DNA of 64,000 nucleotides, taken from the NCBI GenBank assembly GCA_047495785.1, contig JBLDXI010000013.1:2790001-2854000 (forward strand), read 5' to 3'. How positions within the stretch are numbered: the first letter of the stretch is position 1; the number at the start of each line of letters is the position of its first letter. Source of the stretch: Lepidodermella squamata. Lineage: Eukaryota; Animalia; Gastrotricha. This document shows, piece after piece, positions 55,918-64,000 of the stretch. The notes beneath the pieces are model-generated. The model made no database searches. It was not told where the DNA came from and saw nothing but the letters and a program-made list of their open reading frames with translations. Both the position numbers and the translations under genes were made by a program.

Positions 55918-56744
55918 TTTGCATAGAAAAGCGAGATGGCAGAATAATCATTCAATACTGTCGAGCAATTGATGATTTATTCGTTGATGATTGTCAATTA
56001 AAAAACTGTGCAGCCCTTAGATTGGCGGGTGTGGAATTATTGAGGCGCAATGTGGCCGATTTTATGATTAACCAAGTTATCAATGAGTACTGCCGTGAAA
56101 AACGGACAAATCTAGCGCAATGACTACTGTCCAGCCCATTCTTCTTATCTGTTTGTTATCGCTATGCTTTTAGCTCAGTACTATATACCCTCTTTCGCTA
56201 TCCGTAAATTTGGGCGTATATAGGTACGCCTATCTGCCGCTGTCGCAACTTTTATTATCGCTTTATCGTTCGTGTATAAGATTGGCGTACTTGTTCAAAA
56301 TCAGGAAACTTTACTGTGAAAAACATGTTCACGATAATAGTAACGCGCCTGCCTTCTGGCACACGTCCACGTGCTCAAATCACACAGCTGTAAGAGCTTT
56401 CTTTGCAACTTCACACGCCTTGTTTTTCAGAATTTTTTATACCCATATAAGTAACGGCTATCAATAATTATCAGGCGATCTAGACGTTATCATGTTCAAA
56501 GTGCGAATAGTCCTTTCAAAGAGAATCCGCGAATTATACCATTGAGGCTGCTTTTACGTTGTAATAAGACACTCTAAAGTATTACGTGTTATTTTTTCTT
56601 GTTATCCTTTCATCTTAAATCTTAGAACAGCTGTACACACTCTTGGTTTTTTTTAGTTTGTAGTAGCTCAAGTTAATCAATGCATGACTAGATTTTTCCA
56701 CGGCATTTTAATAGTGACCTATTTTATAAAGGATACTTATGATA

Positions 56745-57372
56745 ATGAAATTCCAATTCATGGAAAGCCATTCGTTCGAAACGCGTAAAATCGACGCGCA
56801 GAGAATTCGCCGAAAGTACCCGGACCGGTTGCCGGTAGTTGTCGAAAGAATTCCTGGCTCCGAGGTTCCTGACCTCGATCAAAGCAAATACCTCGTCCCT
56901 ATCGACATCACATTCGGCCAGTTCGTCAGCATTATTCGAAAGGTTAGTTGAGCCAAATTTTTTCGATAATTTTCTATTTTTTGTACAACGAAAGCCGGAA
57001 TTTTTGTAAACCGGACTGCTTTCAGCGGATCTTGTAGAGGTTTCTGCTTGTCCTGTGGTCGTTAACAACGGACACTCCAAACCGGATATTTTCGCCTCAG
57101 TCCAGTTAACAAATTTTTCACTGTATTTGCATTTCCGTGCCCTAATTTTGCCTCTTGCATCGACTTATTTATTGTACCTAATTTTATATTATGCTTTATC
57201 TATTTAGAGACTTGCGCTACCGGCTGATAAGTCTCTCTTCTGGTTCGTTGGCACCAACAACATGCCTCTCCTGTCGACAAACATGGGCGTCTTGCACCAG
57301 GAGTACGTCGATCTAGACGGCTACCTCTACCTGGCCTACAGCGGCGAAAACTCGTTCGGCTCACCGTCATAA
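56745..57372 (+). CDS. ATG8/GABARAP-family protein (GABARAPL2-like), canonical C-terminal Gly
   Basis: Exons 56745-56942 and 57208-57372. MKFQF...[12 protein letters not shown]...KYLVP...[18 protein letters not shown]. Confidence 0.9.
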
Positions 57373-57655
57373 TACAATATTTTCTGTAACGCTTTTCTTC
57401 AAAAATCGAACCTCAATCTCGGTGTTATTCAACTTTATTATGCCTTTCTCAACTTTGGGAACAAAAAATAACAATGATTCTGCCGATTTTTCGCAATAAA
57501 ACTGTTGCAAACGAGCACTACTAAATATTGGCCCTTGACCACGAGAGAACAATGTAACGCGATGAAAGCTCGTCTTCAGCATGAAAAAACATGACAGCAC
57601 AACGCAACTTGAATAAATTACTTTTTATGTCAAGAGACTAATTTACAACCAGACT

Positions 57656-59477
57656 CTAGTCTTCGCCGGGCACCGTCACCCTTTTAGGTCGATTAGCGGC
57701 ATTCGGAGTTATGTCGACCGCAGCGACTGTTAACGGCCAGGCGCCGACTACGGTTCCGGCTTGAACTGCGGCACCTGTTGCGACGGCTAGCTCTGGATCA
57801 ACGCCGACATGAGGCCACCGGCCGCCGAATAAATCAGCCACCATTTGCCGAACTTTCGGAATCCTGGTCGATCCGCCGACTAGCACCACGTCGTCGACGT
57901 CTTTCGGCTGCAGTTTTTGAGGGGCGGCTCCGTCTTCTTCTTCGTCACCGCCAGCTAGCATCCAAGAACCGGATGCTTGTTCAATGGCTGCGACGATAAT
58001 GCGCGGGATTCGGTAGAACAGGTCGAAATTGGCGGCGTCGAATTCTTCGCGGGTTACGTTGACGAGGTCGGAGCCAACTTTAAGCTGGATTGACTCGTGG
58101 GTTGTGAGCAAAATTTTGCCCTCTTCAGCGGCGGCTCGAAGCTGCTCGCGAGGATACGCAAAAGCTCGGCCCATCTCGCTAAGTTTATCGGCTATAAGCG
58201 CTTGAAGTCGGTTGGTGAAGTCCTGACGAAAAAAAATAAAAAAGCTTCAATTACAAAATTTAAATTTTGAAATTATTTGAAAAATCAGACGCACGCAAAA
58301 AGGGCATCGAAAATGTTTGCTTTTTTGAGAAAAAGGCTTTTATTATTGCAAAAACCTATTTATCGATTTTGAATATTCTTCGATACAAGAGCATCTAGGG
58401 TCTTTCAGCGGAACCAAAATTTCGAATAAATCCCAGAAATTCGAAAATATTCATTGTCACTAAGAGGATCCGACACTGTCGGGATATCGAATAATTACTG
58501 AAGAAGACATTTTTGCATAGTTTAAACTTGGTAGCAATTTTCGAGATCACAGGAAAAATTATCAAATTCGCAAAATAATTAGAAAAATAAATCATTTATC
58601 AAAACGTGATTTTGTTTACCTGTCCACCGAGTCGATTGCTTCCTGCTATGGCTAGGGTGCTAAAACTTGTCCCGCTCTTGTCATTTCGGCCAGTCCCGTG
58701 CCGAACAGCTAGTACGGCAACATCGGTGGTGCCACCGCCAACATCAAGAACAATAGCTAACGAAGTAACAACGTCGTGGCCGGTTTCACTCGATTTTTCC
58801 TTCTCTTTCTGCTCGTGAATTCCATAGGCAATTGCAGCTGAAGTTGGTTCATTTAACAACCGAAGAACCTTGACGCCTGTCATTTCAGCGGCAGCTTTCG
58901 TCGCCGCCCGTTGATCTTCATCGAATTCAGCCGGGACTGCTAAAACAACAGCATTTACTGGTCGATTCAGCTGAGAAGTAGCTGCTGAAACCAACCGCTT
59001 TATAATTGCAGCTGAAGCTTGTTCTGGGTAGATTGAAAGCTTAGTATCAGGTGAATCAACCGCCGAAACGTAGAAATAAGGCTTCCCGTCTTTGTCCAGC
59101 TTAATTTCGAAGGGGTAACGATTGTGAAACGCTAAATCTTCCAGCTTTTCGACTTTTTTGCCAATAAATCGTTTTGCATCGTAGATTACAGATTCGGCGT
59201 TTGTCAGCCGATATGGTTCAACTTCTGGTCCTACTAAAGCATCGCCGTTTTTCTTGAACGCAACAATAGATGGAATGCACGTTTTGTTAGACAGCGGATC
59301 GGTAAAAACTAGAATTTCGCCGGTTCCTGATTGAAAAGCAGTTCCGCACGAGAAAGTCGTACCAAGATCGATACCAATCGCTGTTGGTTTAGGCGGTGGA
59401 AGGAATTTCTGGCCTAAATAGCCAGCCAGCAATAACGCAAGAACAGAACAACCGACTATTGTGACTCCCGCTGACAT
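57656..59477 (-). CDS. HSPA13: Heat shock 70 kDa protein 13 (STCH): ATPase-only HSP70 with N-terminal hydrophobic leader
   Basis: Exons 59477-58620 and 58222-57656. LLLAGYLGQKFLPPPKP..IGIDLGTT, LGGQ|DFTNRL, VLVGGSTRIP, WPLTVAAVD. No substrate-binding domain. Confidence 0.92.
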
Positions 59478-59554
59478 TTTTCTAAGTAATTACCTATTAA
59501 TTTTAATAGAAAAGTTAAACCTTGAATAAATTAGTTATAACAAATGGGTTTTAG

Positions 59555-60546
59555 TTATTCGATGCCAAGAGCCTTGGGTAACGTTTCGCTTGACGGGCCT
59601 TGGAAGTAGAAATTTGAGTGATGGGTATTTGGAGTTGGTTCAATGTTAAATTCAGCAATTGGAACACCACGAGATTGAACAATGTGAGCGTAGCCAGCTG
59701 CAGGCCATACAACCGCTGAGGTTCCAACAACCAGGAACAAATCACACTTTTCGAGTATTTCGTCGATTTTACTCAAGACATCCTGCTCTAGAACTTCTCC
59801 AAACCAAACAATGTGCGGACGGAGCAGCTTTTTGCAACCGTCCTTCTGGCACCGGGGTAGCTGCGAAACCGGGATTCGATCAGCTTGAATGTTTGGCTCA
59901 GGAGCACCACGGCCCGCTAGGGCAGGGCAAATTGGGCTATCGTAATTTTTACGAATGTCTCGACAGCCAGTGCATCGGGTTGTGTACAAATTTCCATGCA
60001 TTTCGATCAAATCAGCAGTACCGGCTCTTTTATGCAGCTCGTCGACATTCTGCGTCACTACAGTTAATTCCCTCCCATTCTCGGCCAACCGCTTTTGCGT
60101 TTCGGCAATCGCATAATGGCCCTGTTATTACACGCGCCTTTAGATTCATTTGTAAATAATCCAATAGCATTACTTTGTTGGGACTTTTCTGCAAGACCAA
60201 CTCTCGTCTGTAGTGATAGAATTCCCAAACTAAAGACGGATCAGAGTCGAATGCTTCCGGGGTAGCCAAGTCCTGTAATATTTCAAATCTTAATCATAAA
60301 TTTGACGACCGTCGAATGATTTACTGTAGCTCGGTATGTTCTCCAAAGCCCTCCAGACCCCCGAAAGGTTGGTACACCAGATTCAGCACTGATACCCGCT
60401 CCAGTTAACACAACGACATTTTTGCTCTTGGAGAAAATGGATTGAAACGCCTTATAATCAGAAGATTGGCGAAAAACATTTTTCGATAAGGCCATGGCAT
60501 TAGACAACAATCTCGAATTAAAGGTTCTACTTATCAAAAGATGCAT
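59555..60546 (-). CDS. SIRT5: NAD-dependent protein deacylase sirtuin-5
   Basis: Exons 60546-60325, 60272-60174, 60121-59555. [23 protein letters not shown] (class III YxxR), [17 protein letters not shown]. Confidence 0.95.
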
Positions 60547-60845
60547 GTCCTAAAAACAATGTTGAAAGATGTTACGTTATTAAGGTTAGTTTAATCTCAA
60601 ATTAAATTTATAAATATTGCAACATCGCAAAATAATTAGATTTCATCACCAACAAAATATTGCAGGATTGGAGTGTCGCAAAGACAGCTTGAAAACGATT
60701 GCCAAAAAAGGATTAACGAGTTAATTGGAAGCAAAATCTGCAACGAAATACTCAGCATGATAGTAATATCAGCAAGATGAAGTTAGATTGCACAGGTAGT
60801 TAGTTTTTTAATTAGCACGTTAATATGCAATTTGGAATGCATTGT

Positions 60846-61880
60846 TTAGAAACCTCCGAATTTCCAAACAGTGTGATGAGAATAAATCTCACCAGGGCGC
60901 AGAACGCTTGAAGGGAAGTGAGGAATGTTTGGCGAGTCTGGCGGACCTTGTGTTTCAATACAAAATGCAGATTGCTTTTTGTGAACTGCTCCCTGTTTGC
61001 CATGAACTCCATCCAAGTAATTTCCGGTGTAAACATGGCAAATCGAATCATTAGTAGATACCAGCAGCCAACGCCCAGATACTGGGTCAACGATGCGCGC
61101 CGCGGGGTGTAGCGGGCGGCATTCGTTACAGCCTGGCTTTTTCTCAAACCCACGGACTAAAAACGAATGATCAATCCCAAGGTCGGGAGCGAATTTGTCG
61201 ATGCGGTCACCAATACGGGTCGGCTTGTTAAAATCAAACTGGGTCCCAGCAACATCTAAAATATCACCTGAGGGACAGTTATTTCCTCCTTTCGGCAGAT
61301 ACTTATCAGCAAAAACCTCCAAGTGGTGATCAAGAATAGTTTCAGCATCGTGACCAGCCAAGTTGAAATAGGAATGATTTGTCAGGTTTACAACAGTAGG
61401 CTTGGAAGTAGTGGCAGTGTACTTCAGATGCAACTCATTATCGTCATTCAACGAATAAGTAACGCGAACGGTCAGTTCGCCGGGGAATCCTTCATCGCCA
61501 TCAGGGCTAGTTAATTCAAGGGTAACTGAGTTCTCAGAGGTATCTGAGGGCACAGTATGCCAAACATGCTTGTTGAAACCCTTGATGCCCCCATGCAAGC
61601 ATACTCCGGGACGATTAATGGGCAACGAGAACTCCTTACCATCAATGGTAAACTTCCCGTTCGAAATGCGATTTGCAAAACGGCCAACCAACGCGCCGTA
61701 ATAAACCTTATCATCTTCGTATCCTGGGACTGCATCGTAACCTTGTACCAAGTCAGTTTTCGAACCGTCTTTGTTGGGTACTAGTATACGCTGGATGGAT
61801 GCGCCAAATGGCAATATGCCCACCTCAACACCATTCTTGTTCACTAAGTCGTAACTAAACAAAGCGATACCCATAGACAT
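60846..61880 (-). CDS. GALM: Aldose 1-epimerase / galactose mutarotase (intronless CDS)
   Basis: 344-aa ORF with GRFANRI, LHGG, GFPG, NLTNHSYFNL and FCIETQ. Confidence 0.95.
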   Translation of the reverse strand: MSMGIALFSYDLVNKNGVEVGILPFGASIQRILVPNKDGSKTDLVQGYDAVPGYEDDKVYYGALVGRFANRISNGKFTIDGKEFSLPINRPGVCLHGGIKGFNKHVWHTVPSDTSENSVTLELTSPDGDEGFPGELTVRVTYSLNDDNELHLKYTATTSKPTVVNLTNHSYFNLAGHDAETILDHHLEVFADKYLPKGGNNCPSGDILDVAGTQFDFNKPTRIGDRIDKFAPDLGIDHSFLVRGFEKKPGCNECRPLHPAARIVDPVSGRWLLVSTNDSICHVYTGNYLDGVHGKQGAVHKKQSAFCIETQGPPDSPNIPHFPSSVLRPGEIYSHHTVWKFGGF

Positions 61881-62065
61881 CCTGGAGCAATGAGTGTTTC
61901 TCTATTCTCTAAACATAAATCTCGATCAGTTAGTTATATTAACAAAAAAAGAATGCTGAAAATTTTCAATTCCCAATTCAACATTCAACTAATGATCATT
62001 CAAAATCGAACCAGTGAGTCGACCAATTCTGCATAAGTATAGCCAAGAGAGTAGAGATCCCGGGT

Positions 62066-62135
62066 AAGTTGGTAATGGCAACTACAGGAGTAAAGTTAGT
62101 AATGGCAACTACGGAATAAAGCTAGTAAATGCTAC
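62066..62135. repeat. About 27-bp tandem repeat, 2.6 copies
   Basis: AAGTTGGTAATGGCAACTACAGGAGTA / AAGTTAGTAATGGCAACTACGGAATA / AAGCTAGTAAATGCTAC. Confidence 0.75.
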
Positions 62136-63241
62136 ATGCCACGACAAATACGGGGTAAGAATAAGAAAAAGATTCTTCAATGGTACAGTGGAACTTTCAG
62201 CTACAAGCCCCAACATGTTCTCATTTTGCCTTTAGCCTTAAATCGACAGTCGGGGCGCCGAACTTCACGCTTCAACGCAGACTTCCGGCTTTAACGCTAA
62301 AATCCATCGCATAATCAGCGGGAGTTTTCGCGCGTCATCATGCAGGTCAAGGCCATTAATATAAAAATTATATGCTAAATTGTATAACAAATTTGATTTG
62401 AATGACTTTTTATCTCATCAAATGCAAATACAGTTAAACTTTTGATCGCATCGCATTTTAAGTTTTCGAAAAAGCTGATTTTCTTATCGGTTTTTTTCTT
62501 CAAAGAAATCAAACAAACCAGTATACAGGGACACTTATAAGAGCAGTGAGATCAGGGTATTGCAATGGGACGTGAGATCTTATCAAATGTATGCGCCATG
62601 CAATTCGCCATTTTGCGTCGAAACCCGGAATGAGGCTTCGCCTTAGGCCTGAGCTTGTCAATTGTCAACCGGCAATTTATGGTTTATGGTTCATGGCCAT
62701 GCATGGTGTAAATTTCAGTGAGACCGCTTCAACGCCGGCAATGCAATCGGCATAAACGAATAAGTGGCTGGCTGTCATTTTGCTTCTTGAGGACCCACGC
62801 CGTAATCTAGAACCCTTGACATTCACAAGAGGTCCGTTGTCCGTTGCTTGACAACTGCAACGCTAGAACCCTCAAGAAAGCTGGTTATGAGGCGCGTATG
62901 ACACTTGGAGGATCATTTTAGATTGGATCAATAATCTGATACAAATCGAATTCTAATTTCATAATAATTCAACTAACATTAACTAGCCGTAGGATTTGAT
63001 GGTAAAGCGATATCGTAATTATGACTTATTATTATGGAAAACTTGCGAATGTTTGAATTCAAACGTTAGGGCGTTCGAAGAAACCACTGGCGTTTCAAAA
63101 GTCATAACATTAACTACCTATCTTTTATTATCAATTATTAAGAATCACTCATCGCAAAATATTCATTTCACAAATAAACGGCATCACTCAATGGAATCGT
63201 ATTGGAATCGAAATGTCAACTGCAGTTTCTGAGTCGGGCCA

Positions 63242-63963
63242 CTACTGCAGATTACAAGCAACACTGCTGGTTGGCTTGTCACCAACAAGAACCTTCAATT
63301 CGTTTGCCATAGCTGGCTCTTCTTTTTTGTTCTTCTTTTTCATAGCTGAAGGCGGCGGCTAGAATATAAAATTGAATTTCGAATCTCAAATCGAAAAGTA
63401 GCTGGACGGCAACCTACCGCATTTTTCAAAATTCCGCCTTTAGCTGCTGGTGGTGTTGGGGAAACAACTTCCTCCTCAGAATCGTCGTCATCGTCGTCAC
63501 TCTACACGAGAAACGAATCAAAGCTTAACTCCAGATTTGAGCATCCTATTTTACCTCGCTGTCCATCTTCTTTCCAGTGGCTCGCATAAGCTGGGAGACT
63601 CAAATTTTATAAATAATGTGGCTAATACGTAAAGGCTTACGGCATTTAACTTCATCACTCTAGCTGCAAGTTTTTCTGAAGCTCCAGTTATAATCGCTCG
63701 AACGGTTTTGTAGAAGCCTTCGTAACCAGATCGATCACCTTTTCCTCGAGATTCCCATTCATCAACAAGGTTCTTGAAAAAAATTTCAAGTTCATCGAGT
63801 CAAAAAGGCGAAGTCAAACCTTTATGCGACGCTCGCGTTCTTGATATCGATGAATTTTCCGGTTCAGTAAAATGATCTCTTGCTTGTAAAGAGCTGCTTG
63901 TCGTCCTTCATCATCGTCATCCCGCGATGCAGCAACGGCAACGACCAGACCCTCGTCAGTGGA
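63242..63963 (-). CDS. 3' exons of an unidentified protein with coiled-coil, acidic tract, basic patch and CaaX end; continues beyond right edge
   Basis: Five phase-0 exons with about 50-nt GT-AG introns splice to STDEG...RKIHRYQERERRIK|NLVDEW...|LMRATGKKMDSE|SDDDDDDSEEE...|PPPSAMKKKNKKEE...SSVACNLQ*. Confidence 0.75.
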
Positions 63964-64000
63964 CTAAAACGATGCGGTAACAAATATCGATTTATAATCA

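Follow-up and report, generated by a model that had tools for sequence, protein, structure and literature searches.

A spliced leader on GALM mRNA at the head of a candidate GALM–SIRT5–HSPA13 operon in the gastrotrich Lepidodermella squamata

The window analysed here is a 64,000-nucleotide stretch of DNA from the minute freshwater gastrotrich Lepidodermella squamata (contig JBLDXI010000013.1, positions 2,790,001 to 2,854,000), the minus strand of which carries GALM, SIRT5 and an HSPA13-like Hsp70 head to tail, as read from the strand and from the list of open reading frames (ORFs). The three are unrelated housekeeping genes, and the tight spacing of the run that was pointed out in an earlier note on this DNA is confirmed, with stop-to-ATG spacers of 299 and 77 nt (Table 1). 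GALM matches the Pfam family Aldose_epim (PF01263) with an E-value of 1.3e-81 in a profile search, and a search of public assemblies for the exact GALM protein returned no record. For the other two genes, protein searches were done by single exon (exon 3 of SIRT5 and exon 1 of HSPA13). The best named matches to the former are mollusc and vertebrate SIRT5 proteins at 58–62% identity, with none above 62%, and the protein carries the SIR2 domain (PF02146, Pfam profile search); judged by these matches, the sirtuin of the run is a predicted orthologue of SIRT5, a class III sirtuin. HSPA13 exon 1 has its top match (71% identity) in a metagenomic relative, and its named matches are HSPA13 proteins at 42–47% identity, which points to an HSPA13/STCH-like Hsp70. 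This protein aligns to positions 1–391 only of the HSP70 profile, indicating a truncated form that retains the ATPase domain only, and its hydrophobic N-terminus is conserved in the metagenomic relative. The 397-nt intron of the gene was considered as a repeat or introner and rejected as such, being single copy and devoid of a long inverted repeat. Upstream of GALM, the ORF list holds no minus-strand ORF of at least 60 aa in 61911–64000. In the metagenomic contig that supplies the 71% match (L032), the tail of SIRT5 (E = 3e-6) is followed by HSPA13 in the same orientation, with a spacer of 333 nt between them. As this contig begins inside SIRT5, the comparison of adjacency covers the SIRT5–HSPA13 pair only; the relative's genes downstream of HSPA13 have no match in the window, and the adjacency is thus kept beyond the surrounding synteny.

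Table 1. Features of the GALM–SIRT5–HSPA13 run (window positions; all on the minus strand)
Feature	Position	Strand	Details and evidence
GALM trans-splice acceptor AG in use	61909–61910	−	tttatgtttAG/agaatag; leader joins to 61908; RNA contig
GALM 5′ UTR downstream of the leader	61881–61908	−	28 nt; holds the earlier-proposed CCAG site, skipped in the observed contig
GALM (aldose 1-epimerase) CDS	60846–61880	−	one exon, 344 aa; ORF list, Pfam, RNA contig coverage
GALM 3′ UTR in RNA contigs	60621–60845	−	X3 covers 60621–61319; true end may be ~60570
GALM–SIRT5 spacer	60845–60547	−	exactly 299 nt; strand reading
ATTAAA, candidate GALM poly(A) signal	60590–60595	−	39 nt to the SIRT5 candidate AG; putative function
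SIRT5 candidate trans-splice acceptor AG	60550–60551	−	ttgtttttAG/gacATG; from sequence
Predicted SIRT5 orthologue	59555–60546	−	295 aa; RNA joints, SIR2 domain, protein matches
SIRT5 exons	60546–60325, 60272–60174, 60121–59555	−	spliced joints in RNA contigs
SIRT5 introns	60324–60273, 60173–60122	−	52 nt each; joints in X1 and X3 RNA contigs
SIRT5 stop to HSPA13 ATG spacer	59478–59554	−	77 nt; RNA over nearly all, at SIRT5-like depth
ATTAAA, candidate SIRT5 poly(A) signal	59502–59507	−	18 nt to AG 59483–59482; putative function
HSPA13 candidate acceptors (two)	59482–59495	−	ttaatAG, 59495–59494; ttacttAG, 59483–59482; from sequence
HSPA13/STCH-like Hsp70	57656–59477	−	474 aa; RNA joint, HSP70 profile, protein matches
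HSPA13 exons	59477–58620, 58222–57656	−	RNA contig joint
HSPA13 intron	58619–58223	−	397 nt; joint in RNA contigs
AATAAA, likely HSPA13 poly(A) signal and end of the run	57434–57439	−	X1 contig extends to 57434

RNA evidence was taken from assembled Logan contigs of three runs, a source that cannot show transcript starts, ends or rare forms. One contig of one run, at a depth of 220, fits the window over 61657–61910 with a single mismatch in 254 nt against the genome, and then continues into 23 letters unlike the window, where the leader letters find no match even when up to three mismatches are allowed. The junction is a genomic 3′ splice site composed of a pyrimidine tract and AG (tttatgtttAG, 61920–61909), and the last two letters of the leader, AG, coincide with genomic 61910–61909. 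Upstream of 61910, RNA depth falls from ~220 to 6 and then to 2, as expected for an outron. The GALM junction had been proposed at 61881, next to the ATG; in the contig it lies instead at 61908, reached via the AG at 61910–61909.

In the genome, leader copies number 45, against none for the reversed control, and lie mostly in tandem arrays with a spacing of ~600–750 bp. The full leader is 30 nt (AACCATCTGCGAATTTGATTTGTGTCTAAG), ends in TAAG and reads ...GTGTCTAAG in its 3′ part, with variants at positions 14–17 (TTTG, TTTA, TTAT, TATA and TTAA). In the array copies, the 30-nt leader is followed by a GTATGT donor, then by a hairpin that varies and a 3′ stem that is conserved, and 21 of the 21 distinct gene copies read ...CTAAG/GTATGTATC, the GT donor directly following the leader. 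When the copies are aligned, the 5′ ACC pairs across the donor and the leader forms a hairpin; the conserved 3′ stem carries one compensatory pair and, in several places, changes on one side only, and the middle hairpin varies among copies such that it is not captured in the consensus. Of the leader, GT and Sm site that the earlier note expected of an SL RNA gene in this genome, the leader and the GT donor are found, whereas a canonical Sm site (RAU4-6GR) is not visible between the hairpins in the copy alignment, where the only Sm-like strings (AAUUUGA and GAUUUGU) both fall inside the leader. Rfam, with SL1 and SL2 included, gave no match at E-values up to 1 in three of the SL gene arrays and none in the window. 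A metagenome scan for the leader yielded two DNA contigs, one with an SL RNA gene (L034) and one with an unusual tandem whose units are incomplete copies of leader plus donor (L033), with no trans-spliced mRNA among the matches. The leader is seen on one host mRNA, that of GALM, and also precedes several retroelement-like ORFs as a fixed part of the DNA; these SL-prefixed genomic copies were considered as retrocopies of host mRNAs, a reading that was rejected on their resemblance to retroelement ORFs.

A 30-nt leader from small multicopy SL RNA genes is therefore trans-spliced to the GALM pre-mRNA, where it replaces the outron. The suggestion that this animal has an SL system holds, given a leader that is present on the GALM contig, absent from the window and encoded by multicopy genes elsewhere. 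It is exceedingly improbable that the 23 letters come from a cis 5′ exon, from contamination or from a chimeric assembly. Such an origin would fit a string that is seen at the locus in one contig of one run only, but not one that is missing from the 64 kb around GALM, occurs 45 times in the genome when its control does not occur at all, and always precedes AG/GTATGT in small genes that stand in tandem and share a conserved stem. The overlap of its AG with that of the genomic pyrimidine tract argues in the same direction, as does a second public assembly (L034) in which this SL RNA gene is also present, and 23–25 nt is the length that a 31-mer assembly retains of a shared leader.

Acceptor-like strings quoted earlier for the immediate upstream side of all three ATGs are each present in the sequence: TTGTTTTTAG/gacATG for SIRT5 (AG at 60551–60550), TTACTTAG/aaaaATG for HSPA13 (AG at 59483–59482, together with TTAATAG, AG at 59495–59494) and TTGCTCCAG/gATG for GALM (AG at 61883–61882). 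In a chance test over the window, an AG that follows at least five pyrimidines in eight and lies within 6 nt upstream was found for 11% of random positions or random ATGs, and three out of three would be expected with a probability of ~0.001 under thresholds that were set post hoc; for the SIRT5 site (seven of eight pyrimidines), the same test gives p ~0.012. As the GALM RNA uses an AG 28 nt upstream of its ATG, an AG that adjoins the ATG is a weak predictor of the junction, and the predicted SIRT5 and HSPA13 sites may therefore be wrong too. No cis joint enters the SIRT5 or HSPA13 candidate acceptors in the RNA contigs. RNA coverage by these contigs is nearly complete over both spacers. X1 depth over the GALM 3′ region peaks in the bin 60620–60780, and the extension of the GALM RNA contigs to 60621 leaves no more than ~70 nt before the SIRT5 acceptor. 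The bin 59493–59653 has a depth of 101, which at SIRT5-like depth requires, by arithmetic, that the spacer be covered down to ~59493, and the SIRT5 mRNA would thus end no more than ~20 nt from the HSPA13 ATG. SIRT5 and HSPA13 are covered by X1 contigs at depths of 30–120, against an intron background of about 1–6; the contig depth of GALM is 3- to 8-fold above that of SIRT5 and several-fold above both downstream genes. Neither SIRT5 nor HSPA13 has a leader, loose end or precursor contig among the assembled contigs, an absence that says little in material of this kind.

An operon does not follow from the trans-splicing of GALM alone, since SL-using phyla (to our knowledge, every one of them) trans-splice monocistronic genes as well. 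We nonetheless propose, tentatively and at slightly less than an even chance, that leader-capped GALM is transcribed with SIRT5 and HSPA13 as one SL-resolved polycistronic unit. The region upstream of GALM, free of ORFs for at least 2 kb, would hold a single promoter, and transcription from it would yield one polycistronic precursor of the three genes. Cleavage and polyadenylation of each upstream mRNA would follow its ATTAAA hexamer, and addition of the leader at an AG 18–39 nt past the hexamer would cap the downstream mRNA, with 60551–60550 as the proposed acceptor for SIRT5, and 59483–59482 or 59495–59494 for HSPA13. The intercistronic gap would then be near zero, which resembles the gaps in tunicate operons more than the ~100 nt found in Caenorhabditis elegans.

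The same layout could arise from three separate, tightly packed units, each of the downstream genes being driven by a promoter of its own within the 3′ portion of the gene before it, with trans-splicing trimming short outrons as it does for monocistronic genes of nematodes, flatworms and tunicates. We consider this quite possible, if somewhat doubtful. The leader is observed only on the first gene, the contig depth of GALM differs several-fold from that of the other two, and the 333 nt in front of HSPA13 in the relative are enough for a promoter. However, RNA of the upstream gene fills nearly all of both spacers in L. squamata, and any promoter would therefore sit within transcribed or coding sequence. 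The ATTAAA hexamers, which precede the candidate acceptors by 18 and 39 nt, are also laid out as in known SL operons, and genes in this genome typically lie much further apart than 77 nt, since 28,377 published gene models in 122 Mb amount to about one gene per 4.3 kb (our arithmetic on the counts of PMC11660948). A bicistronic unit of SIRT5 and HSPA13 alone, with GALM as an independent, higher-expressed and trans-spliced gene that lies upstream by happenstance, is distinctly unlikely. It would agree with the 77-nt spacer being the extreme one, with the conservation of the SIRT5–HSPA13 adjacency in the relative and with the 3- to 8-fold contig depth of GALM relative to SIRT5, but the GALM 3′ UTR reaches at least to 60621 and its ATTAAA stands 39 nt before the SIRT5 AG, which leaves as little room for a promoter there.

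Across animals, SL trans-splicing occurs in scattered groups (nematodes, flatworms, tunicates, rotifers, chaetognaths, cnidarians and others), and whether this pattern stems from many gains or many losses is a question of long standing. No report of trans-splicing in gastrotrichs was found in the literature searched, and a string search of the literature with the leader sequence gave no match; so far, then, the SL system appears to be undescribed for this lineage, as the earlier note had surmised. With Gastrotricha, a phylum in an informative position joins the SL-using groups, as Platyhelminthes come out as its sister phylum in the genome paper (Rouphozoa; PMC11660948), and the question of SL homology is testable with the available 122-Mb genome. 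The published annotation was produced with a standard pipeline, and the genome paper, whose transcriptome run was SRR1273732, mentions neither trans-splicing nor operons (PMC11660948); a trans-splicing-aware redo of gene starts, fused or split models and promoter assignments is therefore needed.

[quoted passage not shown] Their leaders measure 16 nt in Ciona and 40 nt in Oikopleura, and the 30-nt leader described here, from a different phylum, has no known similarity to either. The compact genome, the introns of about 50 nt and the poly(A) hexamers just 18–39 nt before the downstream acceptors, which here are candidates, are tunicate-like; intercistronic distances have a median of 1 bp in Ciona and are about 31–33 bp in Oikopleura (PMC7986045). 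As in the SL2 operons of C. elegans, unrelated housekeeping and mitochondrial genes are co-oriented, and the first gene of a C. elegans operon can carry a leader. Upstream 3′ end formation is coupled to downstream trans-splicing in C. elegans. Its intercistronic regions of about 100 nt and its specialised SL2 family (PMC7986045) differ from the shorter gaps found here and from the several leader variants that diverge at positions 14–17. Bdelloid rotifers are likewise microscopic spiralians that add a short leader to many mRNAs. That leader, reportedly described in 2005 and about 23 nt in length, is not known to be related to the present one, and in the protein searches the HSPA13 and SIRT5 of rotifers match those of this run no better than the proteins of other phyla do.

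Flatworms (Macrostomum lignano, Schistosoma and cestodes) also carry SL RNA genes in multiple copies, each about 100 nt long, and other flatworm leaders are similar to that of M. lignano in length (35 nt) and in their ATG end. For M. lignano, trans-splicing affects about 30% of the genes, operons, in which the spacing peaks near 100 bp, contain about 15% of them, and the 35-nt leader has ATG as its last letters (PMC8629364). The leader of L. squamata is 30 nt with a TAAG end, and its genes have no clear Sm-site motif between the hairpins; for these reasons, homology with the flatworm system is a lead and not a result. The heptamer CTGCGAA is common to the two leaders at a similar position, with a chance probability of ~0.04 by our own estimate. 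With this heptamer as a hint, it is conceivable, but rather unlikely, that gastrotrichs have true SL-resolved operons, with near-zero spacers and a poly(A) hexamer 18–39 nt ahead of the trans-splice acceptor, and an SL system homologous to that of Platyhelminthes; if so, SL trans-splicing and operons would be placed in the rouphozoan ancestor rather than in another independent origin.

An X1 contig of the first gene, GALM, carries a foreign 5' end (X1, X2 and X3 are public sequencing runs matching the window, here read as assembled contigs; X1 contains spliced forms and is thus RNA). The contig matches 61657-61910, apart from one mismatch, and runs on into 23 letters unlike the window, TCTGCGAATTTGATTTGTGTCTA in mRNA sense, a string absent from the 64-kb window with up to three mismatches allowed. 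The final AG of this leader coincides with the genomic AG at 61910-61909, preceded by tttatgttt, so that the join is leader|61908 and the GALM 5' UTR consists of the leader plus 28 nt, away from the junction that the earlier note had predicted at 61881 (CCAG|gATG). Upstream of 61910, X1 RNA depth falls from ~220 to 6 and then 2, the pattern of an outron, and retention of 23-25 leader letters is what is expected from 31-mer assembly of a sequence common to many mRNAs. The mechanism of GALM trans-splicing is the known one, in which the capped mini-exon of a spliced leader (SL) RNA is joined to a pre-mRNA at a 3' splice site; in operons this step is linked with formation of the 3' end of the cistron before it.

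The genome was searched for the leader (assembly of 121,234,032 bases in 151 contigs, at most two mismatches, reversed string as control), giving 45 occurrences of the 23-letter string versus 0 for the control, many of them in tandem arrays with ~600-750 bp spacing on contigs C17, C19, C54 and C11. In 21 distinct copies the string lies within AACCA-TCTGCG...GTCTAAG and is followed directly by GTATGTATC, a hairpin that varies between copies, a conserved stem (AGGGCGC...GCGCUCU) and UUU, an order of parts that is characteristic of an SL RNA gene, here with a leader of 30 nt. The gene envisaged earlier (leader, GT, Sm site) was found as a multicopy leader directly before a GT donor, with no canonical Sm site between the RNA hairpins and no Rfam match. 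The foreign leader on GALM RNA together with these genes bears out the proposal that the animal has an SL system, which is demonstrated for L. squamata. It is also new for the phylum within the searchable literature, as had been suspected: the words trans-splicing, operon and intron are absent from the L. squamata genome paper (PMC11660948), papers combining 'gastrotrich' with 'spliced leader' or 'trans-splicing' concern other subjects only, no paper holds the leader string, and recent flatworm SL RNA surveys and the SLIDR/SLOPPR paper make no mention of gastrotrichs.

At least five leader variants occur, differing only at positions 14-17 of 30, namely TTTG (the major form, carried by GALM), TTTA, TTAT, TATA and TTAA (e.g. 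C17:1137309-1142026, C11:1321021-1412435, C3:79055-80517 and C16:808689-809375), and some arrays are mixed. Other copies (table) consist of a full-length or 5'-truncated leader followed in the DNA, without the GTATGT donor, by a short UTR and then a long ORF; a CCHC zinc knuckle (gag/ORF1-like) is present in one of the ORFs, and two ORFs are mutually paralogous. These copies resemble retroelements that were reverse-transcribed from trans-spliced mRNA, so that new copies would be leader-bearing. Another public assembly has the same SL RNA gene on a contig of 1.7 kb (L034:720-812, minus strand; JACCDR010895355.1), and on a further public contig (L033:2440-2560, minus strand; OGCL01009087.1) leader plus GTATGTAT stands three times in tandem as partial units that lack the remaining gene, so L. 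squamata or close kin is represented in other data sets.

Coordinates of the three genes and of leader copies outside the SL RNA genes
Feature	Coordinates	Strand	Details
GALM (aldose 1-epimerase)	61880-60846	-	single exon; Pfam E 1e-81
SIRT5	60546-59555	-	exons 60546-60325, 60272-60174, 60121-59555; two 52-nt introns; 295 aa; RNA-contig joints
HSPA13/STCH-like Hsp70, truncated	59477-57656	-	exons 59477-58620, 58222-57656; 397-nt intron; 474 aa; RNA-contig joint
Leader copies other than SL RNA genes	L002:356-1486; L019:584-1471; L029:1555-2397; L022:1594-3021; L027:1549-2055	-; -; +; +; +	contigs C4, C19, C7, C54, C58

Strand reading, the ORF list and Pfam place three unrelated genes head to tail on the minus strand at 57656-61880, the spacers, put earlier at ~300 and 77 nt, measuring 299 and 77 nt. 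The SIRT5 and HSPA13 models rest on three spliced joints in X1 and X3 contigs, read with canonical GT..AG ends, and their protein searches were made exon by exon. The sirtuin, which shares 58-62% identity with SIRT5 of molluscs and vertebrates, is a SIRT5 orthologue, and the Hsp70 is HSPA13/STCH-like, its named matches being HSPA13 at 42-47% identity and its top match a metagenomic relative at 71%. Top named protein matches are scattered over spiralians, echinoderms and nematodes and have low identity, a pattern to be expected of a phylum that sits on a long branch and has no near relatives with sequenced genomes. Window GC is ~44%. Over 57695-57803 the window differs from X1, X2 and X3 at 11 sites, all 11 at HSPA13 third codon positions, which indicates purifying selection on HSPA13; the differences represent a divergent haplotype or strain. 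Many more allelic differences nearby break up the public contigs. The HSPA13 intron (58223-58619, minus strand) is long compared with both SIRT5 introns, and the relative's HSPA13 is intron-less; the intron sequence occurs only once in the genome and lacks any long inverted repeat, so that an origin from a transposon is not obvious.

The operon status of the trio is likely but unproven. The acceptor-like strings quoted earlier before the three ATGs are present in the sequence; for a random window position, the chance of finding an AG with at least 5/8 pyrimidines before it in the 6 nt upstream is 11%, and for 3/3 ATGs ~0.001, on post hoc thresholds. ATTAAA at 60595-60590 and 59507-59502 lies 39 and 18 nt before the candidate AGs of SIRT5 (60551-60550) and HSPA13 (59483-59482), respectively. 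RNA contigs of GALM cover its 3' UTR as far as 60621 or further (X3 contigs 60621-61319; X1 depth peak 60620-60780), leaving at most ~70 nt between GALM mRNA and the SIRT5 AG. Mean X1 depth in the bin 59493-59653 is 101, to which the single long SIRT5 contig supplies only 15 nt; the remainder attains a SIRT5-like depth (~100) only with contigs covering the spacer to ~59493, and would need ~174, above any depth elsewhere in SIRT5, if limited to coding sequence. This places the SIRT5 mRNA end at most ~20 nt from the HSPA13 ATG, consistent with the ATTAAA at 59507-59502. By RNA-contig cover neither spacer has untranscribed room for a promoter, in line with what was argued earlier for the 77-nt one, and RNA contigs contain no cis-spliced joint into either candidate acceptor. 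With no minus-strand ORF of at least 60 aa in the 2.1 kb upstream of GALM, and HSPA13 ending at AATAAA 57439-57434 convergent with an ATG8-like gene, the trio forms a bounded three-gene unit. The ATG8/GABARAP-like first exon lies at 56739-56951 (plus strand), and the 3' end of that gene probably overlaps the HSPA13 3' UTR, since X1 depth doubles in 57400-57560.

A three-gene polycistron is on this evidence a tentative reading, to which we give slightly less than an even chance. A leader on the first gene alone is no proof of co-transcription. Contigs of GALM are several times deeper than those of SIRT5 and HSPA13, which counts against an operon, and no leader-bearing contig, loose end or precursor contig was seen at SIRT5 or HSPA13 among the assembled contigs, which drop minor forms and cannot display starts and ends. 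The common leader foreseen at all three 5' ends was accordingly recovered at GALM, at another junction, and in no SIRT5 or HSPA13 contig. Three independent but overlapping units are a lesser though real possibility. A bicistron of SIRT5 and HSPA13 only is unlikely. In favour of an operon, the contig of the relative (L032:1-408, an ENA metagenome) opens with the last 24 SIRT5 codons on the same strand as its HSPA13 (tblastn E 3e-6), whereas the genes downstream of HSPA13 there are Cys-loop receptor fragments without counterpart in the window. The spacer in the relative is very T-rich and, at 333 nt, counts against an operon by its length; the pair is retained there and the tight spacing is not. 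Within that spacer, ATTAAA lies ~95 nt past the SIRT5 stop and ttttatttAG 21 nt ahead of the HSPA13 ATG. That the leader on GALM is an artefact is very improbable.

Some X1 contigs are anomalous. One ends at 60682 followed by 19 A on the plus strand, the orientation of a polyadenylated plus-strand RNA antisense to the GALM 3' UTR, with no clear poly(A) hexamer upstream; antisense transcription, priming at an internal site or chimeric assembly may account for it. Low-depth (~3.5) contigs at 58290-58528 (HSPA13 intron) and 62003-62115 (upstream of GALM) join opposite strands ~112 nt apart and, as the DNA has no matching inverted repeats, are probably library or assembly artefacts.

Intercistronic distances have a median of 1 bp in Ciona and are ~31-33 bp in Oikopleura and ~100 bp in C. 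elegans (PMC7986045), and spacing in Macrostomum peaks at ~100 bp (PMC8629364). If the predicted poly(A) sites are right, the L. squamata trio, at 0-40 nt, is nearer Ciona and Oikopleura than C. elegans and Macrostomum. The 35-nt leader of Macrostomum lignano (sister phylum) ends in ATG (PMC8629364), whereas that of L. squamata does not, and the two have only the heptamer CTGCGAA in common, at a similar offset (chance ~0.04 by our own estimate), so that homology of the leaders may be taken as a lead.
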